NCBI RefSeq assembly: GCF_039654945.1
Contig: NW_027361681.1
Coordinates: 3,720,001-3,784,000 of the forward strand
Direction of reading: 5' to 3'
DNA from: Dendrobates tinctorius
Lineage: Eukaryota
DNA length: 64,000 nt
In this document: in pieces, positions 16,703 through 48,035 of the stretch
Layout of the letters: the number at the start of each line of letters is the position of its first letter
Numbering within the stretch: the stretch's first letter is position 1
Program-made: the position numbers and the translations under genes
The notes under the pieces: generated by a model
Told to the model about the DNA's origin: nothing
Database searches by the model: none
Seen by the model: the letters and a program-made list of their open reading frames with translations, nothing else

Positions 16703-17390
16703 GAGAGGACTGTATTCTACAGCCAATGGCAGGAGGTAGTTAATCAAGGTTTTATAGGATAAGACTTCAGAAAACGTGGCCCCTGCAGCTTTGCCGATGT
16801 CCTGACCTCATCTTCAGCCCAAAAGATGGAAGTTTTGCCAAGTCATGGAGGTCCTGATGAATGCTCCTTGGATGTTCCTCCACAGCGTGGGACTATGGTG
16901 ATTGGAGCCGTTCTGAAGGAGAATGTCCAGGGCTCTGGTACTGGCTTGTCCGGTCTGTGTTGATACCATGCCTGGTAACTATATTTACTCACTATGTTGG
17001 CGTGGCTTCATCAACTCATAAAGGATCACGTTACTTCTGGACAATGACACCGCATGTCGCACCCACTGCTACACAACTTCTCATTGTCTGATCTCTGCAC
17101 TCATTTACATGAATTCAAATGGAAACCTCGGGTCAGAGGACAGATCCCTCTAATTTAAGGGGGTGCACATAACTCCCCCCTCCGCCCCACCCACTCACTG
17201 AGTACGGATCATTTGTAAGGGAAATCTCAAAGCAAATATAACGTCACAGAATCAATACCCAAGAACGAGTGATCACATCTCACATTGTCCTATACCCTGA
17301 GTGTCAGGGTCGTTACCCTGTGCCCCAAACGTCAGGGTCTCGCACCCTGCCGCATCTGCTGGTTCCCAGCTCTTGCTATATACAGATGTC

Positions 17391-22949: not shown

Positions 22950-23504
22950 ATGGCGGACGCTTCCAAGCTCGAACCAGAGTACGAGTGTCCCGTGTGCTGG
23001 AATCCGTATAACACCACGTTCCGCACTCCCAAACTGCTGAGCTGCCACCACACCTTCTGCGTGGAGTGCCTGGCCCACCTGAGCTTCACCACCCAGGTGA
23101 GGAACCGCCTGCACTGCCCGCTGTGCCGACACACCACAATGCTACGCCTGGACCAGGTGATCACAGATCTTCCCACCAACACTGTCATCCTCGGCCATCT
23201 CAAATTGGAGCCAGAGAAACATGGACTTTCTGCCCAAGACACCCGTAGACTGAACTTCTTCCAGCGTCCCTCCTCGGTTTATACTCTTAACGTTGCCCAG
23301 GACACAGGGTCCTTGTACGGTGCTCAACAAAATCAGGTACCGACTCCCCCGACCACTATTCCCTCTGACAACTCCTCCTGGCAGTGTCTCCGGAACCCCC
23401 AGTTCCGCCTGTTCTCCTACATGATGATGACTATGCTGGTGGTCAGCATGCTACTGATCTTTTCCATTTTCTGGACTCGCAAGCTACTGTGGGGACCAGG
23501 GTGA
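22950..23504 (+). CDS. RNF183: E3 ubiquitin ligase RNF183 (single coding exon, 184 aa)
   Basis: ECPVCWNP.N.TF.TPK.L.C.H.FCVECLAHLS, RNPQFR.F.Y and LLIFSIFWT...LWG.G match mammalian RNF183; syntenic orientation; acceptor AG at 22895-22896. Confidence 0.93.
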   Translation: MADASKLEPEYECPVCWNPYNTTFRTPKLLSCHHTFCVECLAHLSFTTQVRNRLHCPLCRHTTMLRLDQVITDLPTNTVILGHLKLEPEKHGLSAQDTRRLNFFQRPSSVYTLNVAQDTGSLYGAQQNQVPTPPTTIPSDNSSWQCLRNPQFRLFSYMMMTMLVVSMLLIFSIFWTRKLLWGPG

Positions 23505-28788: not shown

Positions 28789-29280
28789 TTAACTGTGCAA
28801 GGAATGTATAACACACTGATAAAGGGGTCACAGGAGGCCCAGAGTGACAGCACGTTGCCCCTGCAGTCCCATAGAAGAGCCTGCAGAATATGGTTTACAG
28901 GAGACACATGGGGATAGGGGAGAAGAAACTGCACTATAGGGGCCACTGGAGAAAAGCCTGCTCTTTAGTGGGCACAAGGACAGTGCAGGAATAGAGCCTG
29001 CCCTATAGTGAGGAGGTACACAAGGACAGTGTAGAGGAAAAGATTCTGCTTCATAAGGTCTACAGGAAACGCATGGTGAGAAGTGAGAAAAGCCTGCTCC
29101 ATAGGGAGCACAAAGACAGTGCACAAAAACAAAAAAATAGGACCCGCAAACCTCAAGTATTAATCTACAGGTGCAAGAAAACACTAAGTGGCCAATATAC
29201 AGACACATACATACACGATACGTCAGCACAAAGCAACTGAATACAAAAACTCCAATATTGCAGAAAAACATTAAAAACGT

Positions 29281-29355
29281 AAAGTTACTTAGCAGTTTTT
29301 GATCAAAGAATGCAAAAGCCATCCAACCACGTCAAGGTGACCTTTTCATATTGAC
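29281..29355 (-). ncRNA. Candidate HDV-like ribozyme (copy D)
   Basis: P3 ACC/GGU, L3 UUGACGU, P1 GUCAA/UGGAU, then GG, a P4 hairpin, J4/2 GCUAA and a degenerate P2; manual fold only. Confidence 0.45.
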
Positions 29356-29686
29356 AGTCTCTAAACACTAAATATCTTGCCTTTCTAGGAGCCAAAATAG
29401 CCTCATGTGAACGAGGTGTGAAAAGGAAACCAGGCATACAGTAGCTCTCAATTGAAACCTTATTTGAGGAAGATAGGTGGACATGGGTGCTGAACCCTGG
29501 AGGGGGCCACCACCCAACCCCCCAATATGTACTATACATAAAAGATAAATAGGACCTTTAATACCTTTGGTATTAAATTAATGCACAGGTGCACAAAGAC
29601 GCTATGTGGCCACATCACTACCATACACACGATATGTCAGCACACTGCGACTAATGAATGAGGCTGTTTTGGAGTTCATGTATTAA

Positions 29687-30207
29687 AGTGCACTTGTTTT
29701 GGCCACTATAAGATGTGGCTGCTGCCTTTCAGGGCTTATCTACAGGATTCTATAATGCTGTATATAAGCCCCCAGTCCGACCTGCAAGATAAGAAAAATA
29801 AGTTTTGCTATACTCACCTGGGGGAGGGGGTCCGGGTCCGGCGCCTGCCATCTTGCGATGCCGCCCTGCTGCTTGCTTCCTCGCTCCTGGCATCGCACGT
29901 CTGCGCAGGCGTACTTCTCTGCCCTGTTGAGGGCAGAGCAAAGTTCTGCAGTGCGCAGGGCCTCTGACCTTTGCTGGCACCTGCAGTACTTTGTTCTGCC
30001 CTCAACAGGGCAGAGAAGTACACCTGCGCAGGAGCGTAATGCTGGGAGCGAGGAAGCAAGCAAGAGGGTGGCATCGCAAGAAGATGGGAGGAGCCAGACC
30101 CGGACCTGCGACACCAATCGGGCCGGACCGCCAAAAGCCGGGTGAGTATAATAAACCTTATTTTTCTTCTCTTTCAGTTCAGAACGGAGGCTGGTTACAG
30201 GTTCCCT
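29687..30207. mobile_element. Kolobok/T2-type MITE with long internal palindrome
   Basis: TTAA flanks (29683-29686, 30208-30211); right end ACAGGTTCCCT; ~190-bp arms folding back around ~29965. Confidence 0.75.
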
Positions 30208-30932
30208 TTAATTAGTCACAGTGTTCTAATGCTTCATGTATGTATATGGTAGTGTATTGGCGACATAACATATTTGTGCACCTGTACATTAATTTAATAC
30301 CCAAGGTACGCAGGCCCTATTTTTTTCTTTTTTGTGTAGTACATATTGGGGGGCCGGCCACATAAGTCACAAGGTTGATACAGAAGAACCTTGTCTGGAA
30401 AATATGCGAGAAGTGTGCAGAAAAATAGTACATGAATAGGCATCTGTGCACATCAAGTCCTTTTGTTAGGTTTTCAGAGCAGAAACTTAGACGAAAAAGA
30501 GGGATTTTGGGTTCTTACCGTAAAATCTCTTTCTTGGAGCTTTCATTGGGGGACACAGATTACCATGTGTGTATGCTGCGGCTGCTAGGAGGCTGACACT
30601 ATGCAAAAACAAGAAAATTAGCTCCTCCCTGGCAGTATACACCCACCGACAGGCACCAAGTACCTCAGTTGGTGAGAAAGCAGTAGGAGAAGCAACCAAA
30701 AAACTCTTCAACATATGTACCAACCAAACAGGGGACTCAAAGAGCCAACACGGTCCAACTTAAACAGGGAGGGTGCGTTGTCCCCCAATGAAGGCTCCAA
30801 GAAAGATTTTATGGAAAGAACCCAAAATCCCTCTTTCTTTATCGCTTCATTGGGGGACACAGATTACCATGGGACGTTCCAAAGCAGTCCCGAGGGTGGG
30901 AAAAGCAATAAAGGAACGAAAGGAGGAAGAGC

Positions 30933-32099: not shown

Positions 32100-33729
32100 G
32101 ATTACTGGGATGCCTTCTGACTATCTTCTTGACTACCCTTGGGATCAGGGCAAGGGGAGGAAACAGTTAAGGCAGTCGGAACTGGGACCACGGAAACACC
32201 AGGGCGTCGCAACCGACGGCTAGAGGATCCCTTGACCTGGCTACGAAGAGAGGAACTTTGTTGTTCATCCGAGATGCCATGAGGTCGACGTCCGGGATGC
32301 CCCAACGCTGGCATATCTGATTGAAGACCGAGGGGTGAAGGGACCATTCGCCTGACACTAGACCCTGGCGACTTAGGAAGTCGGCTGCCCAAATCTCCAC
32401 CCCTGGAATGTGAACGGCGGAGATCGCCGGAACGTGACGCTCTGCCCAACACAGTATCTTTGCCACTTCTGACATTACCTGCTTGCTGTGAGTACCGCCC
32501 TGGTGGTTAATGTATGCCACGGCCGTGGCGTTGTCTGATTGACTGCGGACTGGTTTGCCTACGAGGAGAGGCTGCCAACGGAGGAGAGCAAGAAAAATTG
32601 CTCTGATTTCCAGAAGGTTGATGGGAAGAAGAGTCTCCTGGGTGTTCCAGCGCCCTTGGGCCGTTTTCCACTGGAAAACCGCCCCCCATCCTAGGAGACT
32701 GGCATCGGTGGTGATGACTTGCCACTGAGGCGGAAGAAAGGACCTTCCCTGGAGAACTGACGCCGCAAATGTCCACCAAGTCAGCAATTGCCTTACTCTG
32801 AGCAGAAGGAGAATGGGAAGGTCCAGAGAAAGTGAGGTCTTGTCCCAGACTGAAAGGATGAACTGCTGGAGAGGGCGAGTATGAAATTGTGCGAAAGGCA
32901 CTGCTTCCATGGAAGCTATCATCTTTCCCGGGACCCTCATGCAGGACCGAAGGGGAATGGGCTCTGAGCGTTTTATGGATCGGATTCCCTTGCAAAGAGC
33001 CGAAAATTTGTCCTTCGGAAGAAACACCCGGGCTCGATTCGTGTCGAATTCCATGCCCAGAAACGTCAGACGCTGAGCAGGGTGCAGGATGGACTTCTCT
33101 TTGTTGACTATCCATCCGAGGCGGCCGAAAGTATTCAGGCTTATCTGAAGACAGTCTTGGCGGGACGAGCCCTTGATCAAGAGGTCGTCCAGATAAGGGA
33201 TGATGAGAATCCCCCTGGAGCGAAGAATAGCCATGACTGTAGCCATCACCTTCGTAAATACCCGGGAAGCGGAAGCTAGGCCGAAGGGGAGGGCCGTGAA
33301 CTGATAGTGGTTCACCTGAATCGCAAAGCGGCGATATCTCTGATGTTGCAAACACACAGGAATGTGAAGATATGCATCCTGTATGTCCACAGAACAGAGA
33401 AACTCCCCGGGTTCCATTGAGGCCATCACCGAGCGCAGGGACTCCATCTTGAAGTGGAGGATCCTTACGTGGCGGTTGAGCAACTTGAGGTCCAAGATTG
33501 GACGAAGGGAGCCTTTTTTGGGAACTACGAAAAGATTCAAGTAGAACCCTGAAAACCGTTCGTTTGAAGGAACGGGGACGATAACTCCGGCGGAAAGAAG
33601 GGAGGAAACGGCTTGAAAAAACCCTGGAATTTGGGACTGCTGTCTTGGTGATCGCGACAGGAAGAAGCGCCTGTTTGGGGGGGAGGGGGGGAATTTGATA
33701 TGTATCCGGACATGATTTCCCTGACCCAA
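32100..33729 (-). pseudogene. DIRS reverse transcriptase/RNase H/methyltransferase-like ORF
   Basis: LRPILDLK, LPFGL, YLDD, TTDASLLGWG, SDNATAVAYIN, ADFLSR, DLMAS; premature stop at 32167 inside the MT-like domain. Confidence 0.92.
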
Positions 33730-40843: not shown

Positions 40844-43800
40844 CTGAAGATAAAAACAATCCACTATAAGTGGGATCCAGTGTAATATAACCACTGTGCA
40901 ATGCAGCTTCATGCAGTCTAATGCTTCATCATTTTATGCTGAAAAGCAAGTTCCTAATAAATCTTGTGTTACCTGCACTGATGCATTGCAGCAAACGATC
41001 AGAACAAGAGAAAGTAGTGCTGCTGATGTTCATAGCTCAGAAATAAATATGTGAACTGATATAGAGCAGGAAAGCCATCAGCTGGGAGTTTTCACTATTA
41101 ATTTACAACAAGCGGTGATCTTGAAATGGTACAGAAAGTTTATAAGTAACTCGTTGTACAATGACTGAATGGAAATGCAAGGAATTATACAATTTTCCCC
41201 TGCCCACATATTGCTGAGTTTACAGTTATTTTTCAGAGCTGCACTCACTATACTGATAGTGCAGTCAATGTGTACACACTGTCACGGGTTTACCGCAACA
41301 GAGAAGCCAGGAGACCACAGTGTCTGATTTCTCCATACTCCTGCACTGATTAGAAGTACTTCATCATATTGAACAGTGCAGGATTAATCTACTCATTTGA
41401 GAGAGCCTGGAGATTTCCTGCTTTGATGATCTCAGCTGTTCAGTGTTGGCCACTCCCCTATGCTATACATACTTGCCTTTAGAAATCAGGGATTGTCAGA
41501 GTTAGTTTCATACTGCCTTGTTCTGAAGTTAGAGGTGTTGGTTGTTTGGGAAAGCATTGGGAGTCTTGTTCAGAAGACTTACTTTGTGATTTGTCTGTGT
41601 GAATATCCTCATCCTCTCCTATTTTTTTTTTTTTTTGGTTTATCCTCGTTCTCTCATATTTGGTTTTCATTCATTTACTTCCCGATGTTCAACTCTGTTA
41701 TCTGAGTGCATATCTGTATGATTGGTATTTTCATTTATCCCTGTATGTCCTCCCTTGTTAGTCTGGTTTGTGTATTCTTATACATCATTACTCCCCACCT
41801 CCCTGGGCTGATTTAGGAGCTCAGCAAGGCATGTAGCCCTGGCGTCTTCACAATCAGAAGTAATGGGATGTCCTGCAACAGTGCCATGACATTAACTCTG
41901 GCCAAACAATTTTTTTTTATCCATCACAGATACTATTACTGCTCTTGTAGGGCAACTGCAGCAACTCAGCCTGAAGGTGGCAGACCTACGCACTGTTTCT
42001 ATTTTAGCATCCAAACATCTGGTTTTAGGGACTGCAACTCCCAGGCAGCCCCAGATGTAGCTCAAGATCGTTTTGCTCAACAGGTTCTCTGGGAGGCAAC
42101 ACAAGTTTGTTGTTTGCAGGAGTCATGTGTGCTATATTTTAAATTACATCCTCACTCCTCAGGAGAAGCAATGGGTGGGGATCGCAATTTCTCTCCTTCA
42201 GGCTGACTCCCAAGTTTGAGCATTTTCTCTCCGTGCAAACCCAGTCTCTTTGGACGGTTGAGGAATTTTTTTTTCATGTGCTGGTTCATATATATCGCGA
42301 CTCCCTGGCCAAGTCTATTCTATGTCAGCTTCGGCAGGGAGACCAGCCGGTGGACAAGTATTGCTCCGAGTTCCGGGGGTGGTCCACCAAATACTAGGTG
42401 GAACGACCCTGTGCTCTGTAGCCAGTTCTGACAAGGGCTATCAGTAAGGGTTAAGGATGCCTTTGCTCTGCATGAGACTCGGGTTTCCCTTGAGGCGGCC
42501 ATGTCTATGGCAATCCGTGTGGACCACAGTGTTCGCCAGAGACATAAAGAGACACTCCAATTTTCGGGAAAGTCGGTGTCAAGGGAAACTAGGTCTGAGT
42601 CAACTGAGGAACCCATGCAGTTGGGTGAGGCAGCACATTCTGTTGGTCCAACTGTAGTTTGGTGTAAAGGGGCGAGTGTTTCTTTGTGGGTGCTTGTCCT
42701 CCCTTAACCCACCATAAACAGCTGCCGGAAAACGAAAAAGCCCGTTTGAGGGGAGGTTGGCAACCCGGGTGTACATATTTCCTCTGTGGGTAGGTCACAA
42801 TTTTATTTTACTTTTTATTAGCGTAGATCCATCTGGGCAAACAAAAGTGGTCATTTCAGCCTCTCTGGCCATTGTGGTGGGGTTTAATTTGATCGTTAGG
42901 TTCATCCAGGTCCTCAAACCATATACACTGTCCAGACCTATACCCATAAACACCATCAACTCTGCACCCTTGAGACAGTCGTATTTTACTCAAGCCATCC
43001 AAGGGTTACATCTATATGTAGGGGCCATGCACTAAGAAAGTATTAACTGTTATGTGTTAGAGCGTCGGCCTTCTCCTGTGGTTCTTGGGCTTAGCTAACT
43101 CTGCACCACCCTGTGGTAGATTGTCAGATTCAGGAGTTCTTAAAGTGGAGTGAGTATTGTCAAGGACACTGCTTGGGCACCTGGCTAGCCAGGGTGAGTA
43201 CCCAATCTCTGCCTGAATACCTGTCTGACTTTGGGGATGTTTTCAGAACAGGGGTGTCAAGAACTCCCCTCCTCATCGTTCTTATACGATTGCGCCATTA
43301 ATTTTATACCTGGGGCCAAGCTGCCAAAGAGCAGACTATATAATATCTCTGTTCCAGAGAGACCATCGCTGAAAGTCTGGCAAAGGGCCATATCAAACAG
43401 TCTTCATCTCCCATTACTGCGGGGTTTTGCTTTGTAAAGAAGAAAGATTATAGGTATGGGATCCATATCCTCACACCCCGGAAAACTTTAACCAGATTGT
43501 AGGAGCAAAATGGCTTTCTATACTGAATATCAGGGGGGCGTATAATCTCATTTGTATTAAAAAAGGGGAATGAGTGGAAGACAGCCTTCAATGCACCTGA
43601 GGGACACTATGAGAACCTTGTGATTCTATTTGGGTTGACAAAAGCTCCCGCCGTCTTTCAGCACTTTGTAAATGACATCTAGTCACCTGGTAGGTAGATT
43701 TGTGGTAATCTATCTTGATGACATATTAATTTATTCACCTGACCTCAAGTCACATCAGGTACATGTCAGGCAGGTTTTACAGATACTTGGAGACAAATTA

Positions 43801-46455
43801 TTTGTGAAACCAGAGAAGTGCATGTTCTCGGTTCAGGAGATCCTTTTTCTAAGTTATTACTTATTGTTCACTGATTTTTGCATGGATCTGGCAAAAGTCC
43901 AGGTGGTACTGGGATTATAATCGTCCTGAGGACTTTACAAAAGTTGTTTGGTTTCGCCAACTACTACCGAGAGTACATCAAAAACTTTTCAGTAGTGGCC
44001 AAACCTTTGACGGATAGAGATCAGGAAAGGAATGGATTTTTCCAAGTGATCCAGTCAGGCCAGCGAGGCACTTAATATCTTGAAAAGATGTTTTGCATCT
44101 GTACAGATTCTTATACAGCCGGACGACACTCAGCCATTTTTTGTAGAAGTTGATGCGTCTGAAGTGGGGGTTGTATTGTTGCATGGTGCATCTCCTGGTA
44201 AATGGTGTCTGTGTGCATATTTTTCTAAGAAATGGTCTTCCACTGAGAAAAACTATGACTTTGCTAATAGGGAACTATTGGCAATGAAGTTGGCTTTTGA
44301 AGAGTGTCGTTATTTTCTCGAAGAAGCAGTTCATCTGGTCAAGGTAATAACTGATCATAAAGATCTTTTATATCTTGAATCTTCCAAGTGTCTGACACCT
44401 AGACAGGCAAGATGGACACTGTTCTTCACCAGATTCAACTTTTTTGTCACATATAGGCCGGCGGGGTATAAAAACCATTAAGGCAGATGCCTTATCTCGT
44501 TTTCCTGGGGGTGGAGATAATTGTGAACCAGTTCCTATACTACAGAAAGGGGTGGTTAGTGCTGCTTTAAGTTCTGACCTTCAGAAAGAGGTTGCTGAGG
44601 CTCAGGGTGACACCCATACTACCTGTTCGTTAGGTAAACTGTTTGTTCCTGTAAATCTCCGTCTTAAGTTTTGAGCGAACATCATGATTTGGTCTTGGCC
44701 GGACAACCTGGTAATAAAGTCACTACAGATCTCCTTACCCAGCATTTTTGGTAGTTTGGGGTACATCAGGATGTCCGGGAGTATGTGCACATTCTAAAAC
44801 CTCTCATACTCATCCATCAGGGTCTCTCCACCCATTGGTGATTCACAGTCTACCTTGGACTCATTTATCGGTAGATTTCATCACAGATCTACCAATATCT
44901 TCAGGTAACACTGTACTTTTGGTGGTAATGGACAGATTCAGCAAGATGTCTCATTTCATTCTGCTACCAGCTTTACCCAATGCCAAGACGTTGGGGCAAA
45001 TTATCAGCAAATTGTGACATTACATGGGATTCCTACAGCGGGGGGTGCAATTTATTCCCAAATTTTGGAGGGCATTTTGCACTCATTTGGGGATCCATCT
45101 GTCGTTTTCTTCAGCCTTAAATCCACAGTCTAATGGGCAAACAACTTGTAAACCAAAAATTTGAAACTTATCTTAGGATCTTTGTGTCTAAGAATCAGGA
45201 AAAATGGGTTACTTACATACATCTAGCTGAATTTGCTGTAAATAATAGTTGTCATGAGTCTACTGGTAAGTCCCCATTTTTCGGGGCATATGGGTTTCAT
45301 CTTCAGTTCATCTCATTTAATAGAAATCGTCCTGCTGGATTACCTGAAGAGGAACAGTTTTCATCATCAATTATGTCTGTGTGGCATGGAGTTATTGATA
45401 ACTTTAAGAGGATGGGGTCCAAAGAGAGTGGCTGATCGGAGATGTTTGGTTGGTCTGGACCTGTGTGATGGTGATTTAGTGCAGTTGTCCTCGAGGAACA
45501 TTAAAAGTTGAAGGTTCCTTTTTAGAAACTGGGTCCCAGGGTCATCGGTCACTAAAAGATTGTGACTGTCAATCCCGCCTTACTTTGCCACCCACTTTTA
45601 GGATTCATAATGTGTTTCACCAGTCTCTGCTCCAAAAAATATGTTGTGTCCTCTGAACCATCATCATCACCACCTCCATCTCCAATCAGTCTTGATGTGA
45701 ATTTGAAATTTGAGATTGCTAAGATCATTGATTCTTGCTTGGTTCCTCGGTCTCTTCAGTATCTGGTACACTGGAAGGGATACAGTCCTGAAAAAGAGGA
45801 CATGGGTAACAGAATTTTATGTTCATGTGATCAGGTTGATCTGGTCTTTTCACGCGGAACACCATGATGGACCTCAGGGGCGAGTCTCTTAGAAGGGGGG
45901 TACTGTCATGGGTTTACCATGACAAAGAGGAGCCAGAAGACCGCAGCGTCTGATTTCTCCTATTCCTGCACTGGTTAGGAGCACTTCATCATCATATTAA
46001 ACAGAGCAGTTTTCTGCTAGCGGTACAGGGATTAATCTGTTCAGTTGAAGCTCCTGGTACTGTCTCAGCTGTTCAGTGTTGGCCACTCCACTATATATTC
46101 GCGCCTCTGGCAATCAGGGATTGCCAGTGTTAGTTTCGTACTGCATGGTTCTGGAGATTGAATGTGCTGGTTGTTTGAGGAAGCATTGGGAGAGCTGTTC
46201 AGAAGACTTTTGCTTGGTGATTTGTCTGTGTGCATATCCTCATCTTCTCCTATTTGGTTTTTCCTTCCTTTACGTCCCAGTGTTCCACTCTGTTTGTGAG
46301 TGCATATTTATATGATTGGTAATTTCATTTACCCCTGTACATCTTCCCTTGTTACACAAAGAAAAAACACAGTATGACAAACGTGCAAAACTACTCTGTG
46401 GTAAAAAAATATAACAGTAGACAGCAAGTGCTAGTAAAAAATGGTAACAAAAACA

Positions 46456-46535
46456 GGGTATTTAGTTGATACGTTTTTTGCAAGAAATGTATACTAAGCC
46501 ACTCCACCAACGTCACGGTATACCCATCTCGTAGC
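46456..46535 (-). ncRNA. Candidate HDV-like ribozyme (copy C)
   Basis: GCUAC-GAGAU-GGGUAU-ACC-GUGACGUU-GGU-GGAGU-GG-P4-CUAA-AUACCC; manual fold. Confidence 0.5.
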
Positions 46536-46688
46536 AATCCTATCTAATGTATTTAAAACCTGATCATGTGAACAGTACCTATATGAGCAGGATTCAGAAA
46601 GGCGCTTCTTATGTGGGCACGCTGTGTAAGACGGCTCTTTATGTGCGTGTCACACAAGAGGGGGGGGGTAAATACATTAGATAGGACT

Positions 46689-46768
46689 GCTCCGAGATGG
46701 GTATACCGTGACGTTGGTGGAGTGACTTATGTTTTTTGCAAAAAATGTATGCTATCAACTAAATACCC
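46689..46768 (+). ncRNA. Candidate HDV-like ribozyme (copy A)
   Basis: P1 GCUCC/GGAGU, P2 GGGUAU/AUACCC, P3 ACC/GGU, J4/2 CUAA; manual fold. Confidence 0.5.
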
Positions 46769-47103
46769 TGTTTTTGTTGTTTTTTACGAGCACTTGCTGT
46801 CTACTGTTATATTTTTTACAACAGTATTTTTGCACGTTTGTCATACTGTGTTTTTTCGTGTTTCAGTCTTTGGGTGGTGTGAACACTGTCCAACCGATCT
46901 ATTCATTTTTGTGCGCGTCACATGTGTTTTTAATCTATTAGTTCTTTGCTCATGCAAGTTTTGGGAGTTTCCCTCCCCTCTCGTGTGACACGCACATAAA
47001 GAGCCGTCTTACACAGCGTGCCCACATCAAAAAGCGCCTTTCTGAATCCTACTCATATAGGTACTGTTCACATGATCAGGTATTAAATACATTAGATAGG
47101 ACT

Positions 47104-47182
47104 GCTCCGAGATGGGTATACCGTGACATTGGTTGAGTGGCTTAGTATACATTTTTGCAAAAAACGTATCAACTAAATACCC
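47104..47182 (+). ncRNA. Candidate HDV-like ribozyme (copy B)
   Basis: Same fold with L3 and P1' substitutions. Confidence 0.45.
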
Positions 47183-47551
47183 TGCTTTTCTTATCATGTT
47201 TTACTAGCACTTGCTGTTATATTTTTTACAACAGAGTATTTTTGCACGTTTGTCATATTGGGTTTTTGCTTTGTGTTTCAGTCTTTGGGTGGTGTGAACA
47301 CTGTCCAACCGACCTGTTCATTTTTGTGCGTGTCACATGTTTTTAATCTTCCCTTGTTAGTCTGGTTTGTGTGTTCTTACACACTACAACTCCCCTCTTC
47401 CCTGGGTTTGGAGGAGGGGGACAGATATAGGGCCGATTCAGGAGGTTAGCAAGGCACGTGGCCATGGTATCTTCACTATCTGAAGTAATCTTGAGAGCAG
47501 AGAGGGCGCCCCTAGCTCTGGGATATCCTGCAACAGTGCCGTGACACACAC

Positions 47552-48035
47552 ATTACATTAATGATCCTGTATTGATTCAGAGTTATACTCCATATCTGTA
47601 ATCACTATTCTGGTGGAGACTGTGTACATACATTACATTACTTATCCTGTACAGATCCTGAGTTACATCTGGTATCATACTCCAGTGCTGCACTCACTAT
47701 TCTGCTAGTACAGACACTGTGTACATACATTACTGATCCTGAGTTACACCCTGTATTATACTCCAGAGCTGCACTCACTATTCTGCTGGTGCAGTCACTG
47801 TGTACATACATTACTGATCCTGAGTTACATCCTGTATTATACCCCAGAGCTGCACTCACTATTCTGCTGGTGCAGTCACTGTGTACATACATTACATTAC
47901 TGATCCTGAGTTACACCCTGTATTATACTCCAGTGCTGCACTCACTATTCTGCTAATATAGAGTCACTGTGTACATACATTACTTATCCTGTACTAATCC
48001 TCAGTTACACCGTCCAATATTCTGCTGGTTGTTAT
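47552..48035. repeat. 81-bp minisatellite (also 41230-41279; target of the Gypsy insertion)
   Basis: GAGTTACA recurs at 47660, 47741, 47822. Confidence 0.88.

Follow-up and report, generated by a model that had tools for sequence, protein, structure and literature searches.

The stretch of DNA considered here, hereafter the window, comprises 64,000 nucleotides of the genome of the frog Dendrobates tinctorius (contig NW_027361681.1, positions 3,720,001 to 3,784,000). It contains a 991-bp non-coding insert, which we call E1, and a diverged relative of it, E2, and this report concerns the structure of these two elements and of an RNA fold that they share, whose topology is that of the hepatitis delta virus (HDV) ribozyme. 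E1 lies within an old long terminal repeat (LTR) and is flanked by a target-site duplication (TSD). The features of this locus, in coordinates of the window, are as follows.

45902..47489, plus strand: LTR-like repeat, interrupted by E1, of a decayed Gypsy element with a chromodomain (its joined flanks match 41278-41864)
46341..46354, no strand assigned: left copy of the TSD, ATCTTCCCTTGTTA (exact 14-nt direct repeat; single copy in the paralogous LTR)
46355..47345, plus strand: element E1, 991-bp non-coding insert (bounded by the TSD copies; open reading frames without Pfam family or homologue)
46355..46668, minus strand: inverted partial unit on the 5' side of E1 (blastn, 91% over 314 nt; four inverted repeat pairs)
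46669..46929, plus strand: 5'-truncated direct unit, segment B, 261 nt (five direct repeats at 412-417 spacing; 85% identity to 47084-47344)
46930..47345, plus strand: full 415-nt unit, reaching the 3' end of E1 (this end aligns with the 3' end of E2)
47346..47359, no strand assigned: right copy of the TSD, ATCTTCCCTTGTTA (exact 14-nt direct repeat; single copy in the paralogous LTR)

Considering that remnants of RVT_1, RT_RNaseH and Chromo domains were found in open reading frames (ORFs) at 43672-45867, between two LTR-like repeats, the host is a decayed Gypsy element (chromovirus) and the repeat split by E1 is its 3' LTR. When one copy of the TSD was removed, the joined flanks of E1 were continuous and matched the other repeat (41278-41864) with 70% identity across the junction. 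This paralogue is uninterrupted and contains only one GTCCTCCCTTGTTA, that is, it represents the empty site, and E1 is therefore a discrete insertion with a 14-bp TSD. The first TSD bases after the 3' end of E1, ATCT, are also the unit's own continuation at 46931-46934, and this overlap is possibly a microhomology used in priming. We found that the internal units of E1 differ from each other by 9-15% and the two host LTRs by 30%; the insertion is old and almost certainly inert. As to its mechanism, E1 is very probably a target-primed retro-insertion.

The order within E1 is an inverted truncated copy, then a 5'-truncated direct copy, and then a full copy. The inverted partial unit is the reverse complement of 46971-47276 and runs ~12 nt beyond this match, towards unit position 46957, while segment B repeats 47084-47344 at a spacing of 415 nt. 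The direct part thus measures 677 nt, or 1.63 head-to-tail units of 415 bp. No poly(A) or simple-repeat tail is present in the sequence of the E1 3' end, no further copy of E1 was detected in the window by blastn, and the ORFs inside E1, including a spurious one of 125 aa that was used as a query, matched no Pfam family and had no homologues. The hallmark of Penelope-like insertions is a partial tandem (pseudo-LTR), optionally preceded by an inverted copy that is truncated on its 5' side; they lack poly(A), and their TSDs vary. An earlier note on this DNA had described a 991-bp insertion without recognizable coding content that splits a Gypsy 3' LTR, has a perfect 14-bp TSD and consists of ~1.6 head-to-tail 415-bp units with a 5' inverted partial copy, and this description was borne out by the chromovirus remnants, the paralogous LTR, the exact ATCTTCCCTTGTTA at both ends, the ORF searches and the blastn matches.

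The inverted arms of E1 are long (~310 nt) and, as described below, its family is very abundant, so that one could also take E1 for a fold-back DNA transposon of the type of miniature inverted-repeat transposable elements (MITEs), or for a static satellite fragment that was duplicated together with its flanks. However, the arms are not terminal on the right side, the two termini of E1 are unrelated, and an uninterrupted paralogous site exists. Moreover, a TSD of 14 bp exceeds the fixed TSDs of the known DNA transposon superfamilies. We regard the view that E1 is not a retroelement as hardly credible.

Two further observations concern the ends of E1. The 3' end of the unit, TTTTTGTGCGTGTCACA (47321-47337), is 94% complementary over 17 nt to 46984-47000 near the unit start, and this pairing also spans the tandem junction in the predicted fold; such a panhandle could bring RNA ends close to each other. 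In addition, in a contig of run X16 (its status as RNA is a guess) 255 nt of unrelated sequence precede a match that begins at 46356, which may reflect another copy with exactly the left boundary of E1, or a chimeric contig.

Known retrozymes and Penelope-like elements carry hammerheads, and long interspersed nuclear elements (LINEs; R2, RTE and L1Tc) are known to have HDV-like ribozymes at their 5' ends. No hammerhead CUGANGA box occurs on either strand of E1, as the earlier note had claimed for the canonical hammerhead, or of E2, and Rfam at gathering score found no ribozyme, hammerhead included, in the whole 64-kb window. By curated models, E1 is neither a hammerhead retrozyme nor a recognized HDV-like ribozyme. 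The canonical HDV descriptor (G1.U, a CC/GG P1.1 and C directly after P4) gave scattered matches of low quality, none of them conserved between the units. Threading, on the other hand, placed a fold of HDV topology, of ~82 nt, once in each unit and a third time in the inverted copy. The two folds of the direct part are 415 nt apart, at the spacing that the earlier note had given as exact.

46687..46768, plus strand: HDV-like (L1Tc-type) fold of unit 1, by threading (P1 6/7, P2 6/6, P3 ACC/GGT, J4/2 CTAA)
47102..47182, plus strand: HDV-like (L1Tc-type) fold of unit 2, by threading
46456..46537, minus strand: HDV-like (L1Tc-type) fold of the inverted copy, by threading
46687..47101, plus strand: predicted 415-nt monomer between the two putative cut sites, from the spacing of the C1 positions

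The 5' part of the E1 fold consists of P1a CTGCTCC, five unpaired bases, P2a GGGTAT, P3a ACC and L3 GTGACGT(T), and the 3' part of P3b GGT, P1b GGAGTGG, a C, a long imperfect P4 hairpin, J4/2 CTAA and P2b ATACCC. This nested double pseudoknot, in the order P1a-P2a-P3a-L3-P3b-P1b-P1.1-P4-J4/2-P2b, threads in all four copies (three of E1 and one of E2), with pairing of 6/7 in P1, 5-6/6 in P2 and 3/3 in P3. In all four, P1.1 is a single G-C pair between L3 position 3 and the C after P1b. The pair that closes the 7-bp P1 at the predicted cut site is C1-G, which is of the L1Tc type, and the canonical G1.U37 is not present. CTAA stands directly before P2b in E1 and is followed by GT in E2. The predicted cut lies 5' of C46687 in the unit-1 fold and 5' of C47102 in the unit-2 fold, with C46759 and C47173 as the respective candidate catalytic residues. 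Within the unit the fold is internal, at position ~173 of 415, and not at the 5' end of E1.

Each of the three E1 folds carries one or two damaging private substitutions. In the unit-1 fold the last base of P1b is changed from G to A, leaving C1 unpaired, and P4 has an indel; in the unit-2 fold the first base of P1b is changed from G to T, and CG in L3 has become CA; in the inverted-copy fold C1 is changed to T, and position 6 of P1a from C to A. Because all three folds carry such mutations, E1 is almost certainly an inactive fossil copy. As for the predicted 415-nt monomer, its folding is mildly more stable than that of shuffled sequences (z = -1.6 on the plus strand and -2.9 on the minus strand).

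E2 provides a comparison from a second family.

29125..29690, minus strand: E2, one full ~415-nt unit and a 5'-truncated upstream unit (direct repeats at 412-418 spacing)
29281..29357, minus strand: predicted ribozyme fold of E2, 77 nt, the best-preserved copy in the window (threading and match to a descriptor derived from trypanosomatids)
30207..30353, plus strand: inverted partial copy of E2 (78% identity to 29518-29658 reversed; two inverted repeat pairs)

No similarity between E1 and E2 was found by BLAST. The local alignment of the E1 unit with E2 scored 50, against 29.4 +/- 4.2 for shuffled sequences (0 of 300 reached 50), and was collinear over 267 nt up to a common T-rich 3' end; therefore E2 is a distant relative of E1. 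The E2 fold, with its candidate catalytic C at 29292, has P1 CTGTCAA/TGGATGG (6/7), P2 AAAGGT/AACTTT (5/6), P3 ACC/GGT, L3 TTGACGT and J4/2 CTAA(GT), so that there is one mispair each in P1 and P2. Between the two elements the stem sequences differ, while ACC, TTGACGT, GGT, the C after P1b and CTAA are kept. Positions 4, 5 and 7 of P1 and positions 1-4 of P2 are changed on both sides and still pair. Because MAFFT placed E2 out of structural register, the pairs were counted by threading each copy, without a covariance model.

No clear TSD was found for E2. The proposal that the inverted arms of E1 and E2 both have their outer ends at a common TTGGGTGGTG motif was rejected, since in E2 the motif lies in a non-homologous part of the unit. 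A palindromic stretch of 516 bp (29691-30206) lies exactly between the direct part of E2 and its inverted copy; its arms (~29829-29951 and ~29981-30106) are 81-87% identical, and 29518-30353 thus forms one long hairpin. The palindrome may represent a MITE that inserted at the junction, or it may belong to a snap-back event.

The closest counterparts of this fold were found in the L1Tc/ingi clade of trypanosomatid retroelements. In T. cruzi, L1TcRz is active as an HDV-like ribozyme; its P3 has 3 bp and its P1.1 has 1-2 pairs (PMC3185411). According to PMC4035085, whose supplement gives the sequences, L1Tco(78)Rz and NARTco(78)Rz are highly active, and in vitro cleavage by LmSIDER2A(81)Rz is at least moderate, its extent varying with Mg2+ and with the sequence upstream. 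The 5' part of L1Tco reads CCCTGGC, GCA, GCCGGC, C, ACC, TCAACGT, GGT, GCCAGGG, TC, and its 3' part CAGTA with a hairpin, ..GCAAAGT, GCCAGC (PMC4035085 supplement). These ribozymes share with the frog fold a length of ~77-82 nt, a 7-bp P1 closed by C1-G (the closing pair of the clade is non-canonical, worded as a 'C1A39' mismatch in PMC4035085), a P3 of ACC/GGU, P1b directly after P3, a single-pair P1.1 and, as seen in E2, an L3 of 7 nt with U at its start and ACGU at its end. J4/2 is C-N-A-A in both, namely CAAA+GT in L1Tco and CTAA+GT in E2. Both L1Tco and E2 have a 6-nt P2a followed by C, a 6-nt P2b that pairs 5/6, and 28 nt from P1b to AAGU, while the YAGUA after P1.1 is in common with E1 only. 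P1.1 is G-C in the frog and A-U in trypanosomatids, changed on both sides, and L3 positions 2-3 are UG in the frog as against CA in the clade.

A descriptor was composed from the trypanosomatid features: C1; a P1 of seven pairs, no more than one of them mispaired; a stretch of 6-14 nt; ACC-T-NNN-CGT-GGT, followed immediately by P1b; a next base that pairs with L3 position 3; C-N-A-A plus 0 or 2 nt; and a P2b pairing in at least 5 of 6 positions. It matched once in the 64-kb window, in E2, and not at all in two sets of dinucleotide-preserving shuffles (0 in 300 and 0 in 1149); its bare core motif occurred 0.08 times per shuffle. The E1 folds miss the descriptor through their private changes. 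The fold is more than a chance look-alike, as it matches active L1Tc-type ribozymes both in its helices and in its unpaired motifs and shows compensating changes in E2. A separate match at 17337 on the minus strand, to a bare CC-N-TG-N-CGT..GG core, has no P1 partner upstream and was taken as chance (0.9 expected per window).

The abundance of the family was investigated in the contigs of four public runs from three organisms (A, B and C), aligned at 85% likeness. The E1 family was extremely abundant in the DNA runs of two organisms and present in the third, amounting to thousands of contigs. Exact-pattern scans for further copies in metagenome and viral contigs found nothing. The majority bases of the family restore damaged bases of the fold at 46532 (T>G) and 46537 (A>G), both given for the plus strand, at 47128 (G) and at 46484. 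Some family members have a U as the first base of L3 (place 46516) and an L3 of 7 nt (place 46509). In organism C's run the base that gives this U accounted for 91% of the word depth, as against 5-7% in organisms A and B, and subfamilies thus differ between species at this core position of the putative ribozyme.

Taken together, we hypothesized that E1 represents, as a fossil copy, a Penelope-style retroelement of frogs that is abundant, non-coding and non-autonomous and whose unit carries an L1Tc-type HDV-like ribozyme, and we give this reading a probability of about 0.65. The part that concerns the fold itself is firmer, and we consider it likely that the fold is a real, selected feature of the family. 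It is also reasonably probable that intact members of the family self-cleave.

Several observations weigh against this reading. The Rfam models of HDV type were silent: cmscan at E<=10 found no ribozyme family in 46200-47500 (1.3 kb) and no HDV-type match in two 121-nt pieces that hold the fold. The nested folding energy of the fold has a z of about 0 relative to shuffles, and RNAalifold, like the nested minimum free energy, was not significant, with P2 and P3 present in the consensus. The covariation comes from two families (E1 and E2) alone, and MAFFT alignments place E2 one column out of structural register. The descriptor was written after the frog sequence had been seen, and it leaves L3 positions 2-4 free. 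In the E1 copies, L3 position 1 is G and there is an extra U, whereas UUGACGU of E2 fits the rule of an L3 of 7-8 nt with U1 and G6, and in organisms A and B most of the family has G at this position (place 46516). An alternative register of P4 could, moreover, pair the CTAA stretch of J4/2 in E1. The ends of E1 miss the predicted cut, the start of the direct part by 18 nt (upstream of C1) and the 3' end by 243 nt (downstream). In the conserved L3 block one can also read a TGACGT(GG) site resembling a cAMP response element or an unfolded protein response element (CRE/UPRE). Finally, no ORF for a Penelope reverse transcriptase (RT) or GIY-YIG was found in the window, including beside E2, where the sole long RT ORF (32167-33729) is of the LTR/retroviral type.

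Some of these points would be expected if there were no ribozyme at all and the ACC-TGACGT-GGT block were a signal at the DNA level or bound by protein, for example an internal promoter element similar to CRE/UPRE or a site that the RT recognizes, with helices that arose by chance. TGACGT(GG) is indeed a core of the basic leucine zipper (bZIP) type, and the silence of Rfam, the energies near zero, the two-family covariation and the many low-quality matches of the loose canonical descriptor agree with such a view. Against it stand the architecture, the spacing and three separate unpaired motifs that match active ribozymes, the absence of descriptor matches among the 1149 shuffles, and the P1, P2 and P1.1 positions that are changed on both sides and still paired. 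A promoter role would not exclude cleavage either, as Pr77 of L1Tc is promoter and ribozyme at once (PMC3185411). We therefore regard the view without a ribozyme as decidedly unlikely.

A different question is which machinery mobilizes the family. A Penelope-like element is the most likely helper and has, in our estimate, about an even chance. The closest relatives of the ribozyme do not sit in Penelope-like elements; all of them come from LINEs of the ingi/L1Tc clade and their non-autonomous derivatives. Like NARTc, RIME and SIDER in trypanosomes, E1 might accordingly be the partner, resembling a short interspersed nuclear element, of a LINE of the ingi/L1Tc type (Vingi-like). The same ribozyme would then merely release the RNA's 5' end from read-through transcripts, no circle would be formed, and the tandem and inverted parts would be by-products of template jumps or twin priming. 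The 14-bp TSD fits target-primed reverse transcription at an endonuclease nick in general. The 3' end of E1 lacks a tail of the poly(A) or simple-repeat kind, however, the fold is not at the 5' end of the insert, the layout is that of Penelope, and no LINE ORF was found in the window. A LINE partner thus seems unlikely, somewhat less so than the absence of a ribozyme.

Under the preferred reading of a Penelope-style element with an L1Tc-type ribozyme, the course of events could be as follows. In intact members the fold would cut the transcript just 5' of C1, and a transcript running through at least two units would be trimmed to a 415-nt RNA whose ends are a 5'-OH and a 2',3'-cyclic phosphate. 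This unit-length RNA (linear, multimeric or ligated into a circle) would be copied by the RT of the helper, primed at the nicked target. Copying would begin at the fixed T-rich 3' end and exceed one unit, giving the 1.63 units that are seen. The entry into the old Gypsy LTR was one discrete event, in which the 14-bp TSD was made. The ends of E1 lie off the predicted cut site, and therefore a simple linear monomer did not serve directly as the template; a better fit would be a multimer, or a circle on which copying starts at a fixed point, the T-rich 3' end. The earlier note had gone further and proposed a 'delta retrozyme', in which transcription through the dimer and two cuts would yield a 415-nt monomer that could circularize and be retrotransposed in trans by a Penelope RT. 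In the present version, an L1Tc-type HDV-like ribozyme of intact members would cut tandem transcripts into such monomers, and these would be ligated into circles and undergo rolling-circle reverse transcription by a Penelope RT. The insert with its TSD, the layout, the lack of a hammerhead and the one fold per unit stood, while its link to Penelope found no corresponding ORF in the window. The complete cycle is in our view tentative and rather doubtful.

The window has some further content. A tandem repeat of 81 bp (47650-47991, 4.1 copies, 88% match) lies just downstream of the LTR split by E1, with weaker copies back to ~47546 and on to ~48030. The N-terminus of a Tc1/Sleeping-Beauty-type transposase was found at 1021-1641 and a RING-finger ORF at 22950-23504.

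Hammerhead retrozymes are known in amphibians, where they are linked to Penelope elements (PMC7229834; PMC7761336; preprint 10.64898/2026.07.22.740005). A full-text literature search, whose coverage was incomplete, returned no description of a tandem retrozyme-like element with an HDV-type ribozyme or of an L1Tc-type ribozyme outside trypanosomatids; the earlier note, too, knew of no description of an HDV-ribozyme retrozyme in amphibians. If intact members of the family are delta retrozymes, they would represent a second, independent ribozyme solution to the life cycle of retrozymes, and frogs the first vertebrate home of a ribozyme type so far reported from trypanosomatid LINEs only. A non-coding, tandem element of Penelope style with an L1Tc-type ribozyme would mean that self-cleaving modules have been swapped between classes of retroelements, and it would point to a source of unit-length and possibly circular RNAs that is very abundant in frog cells and easy to assay. 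Since the Rfam models miss the L1Tc-type subtype entirely, it is probably under-counted in genome annotation.

Among known systems, Penelope-like insertions are laid out like E1: an inverted copy that is truncated comes first, then a direct copy truncated on its 5' side, and last a full one. They likewise have no poly(A) and a long TSD, and they differ from it in that E1 has neither a hammerhead nor an RT/GIY-YIG ORF. The non-LTR retrozymes of metazoans (Cervera and de la Pena 2020, PMC7229834; Li et al. 2026, 10.64898/2026.07.22.740005) are likewise non-coding tandem units of a few hundred nucleotides with one motif of self-cleaving type per unit, dispersed in amphibian genomes and with Penelope as the proposed helper. 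Their defining type I hammerhead is absent from E1, which has the HDV-type fold in its place and a monomer fold that is only mildly stable. HDV-family ribozymes of R2 and other LINEs are described as serving the processing of retroelement RNA, also in internally deleted non-autonomous derivatives (PMC3774820; PMC7761336). R2-type ribozymes and the R2-derived short internally deleted elements (SIDEs) resemble the frog case in housing an HDV-family ribozyme in a retroelement, but their core is a canonical HDV-like one at the 5' junction of the element, whereas the frog fold has an L1Tc-type core and lies inside a tandem unit. The members of the L1Tc/ingi clade differ from the frog family in their hosts, the latter living in a vertebrate, and in the place of the ribozyme, which in the clade stands at the 5' terminus of a poly(A)-tailed element and in the frog lies within a 415-nt tandem unit. 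NARTc and SIDER nevertheless resemble E1 in that they, too, house this type of ribozyme in non-coding, non-autonomous retroelements.

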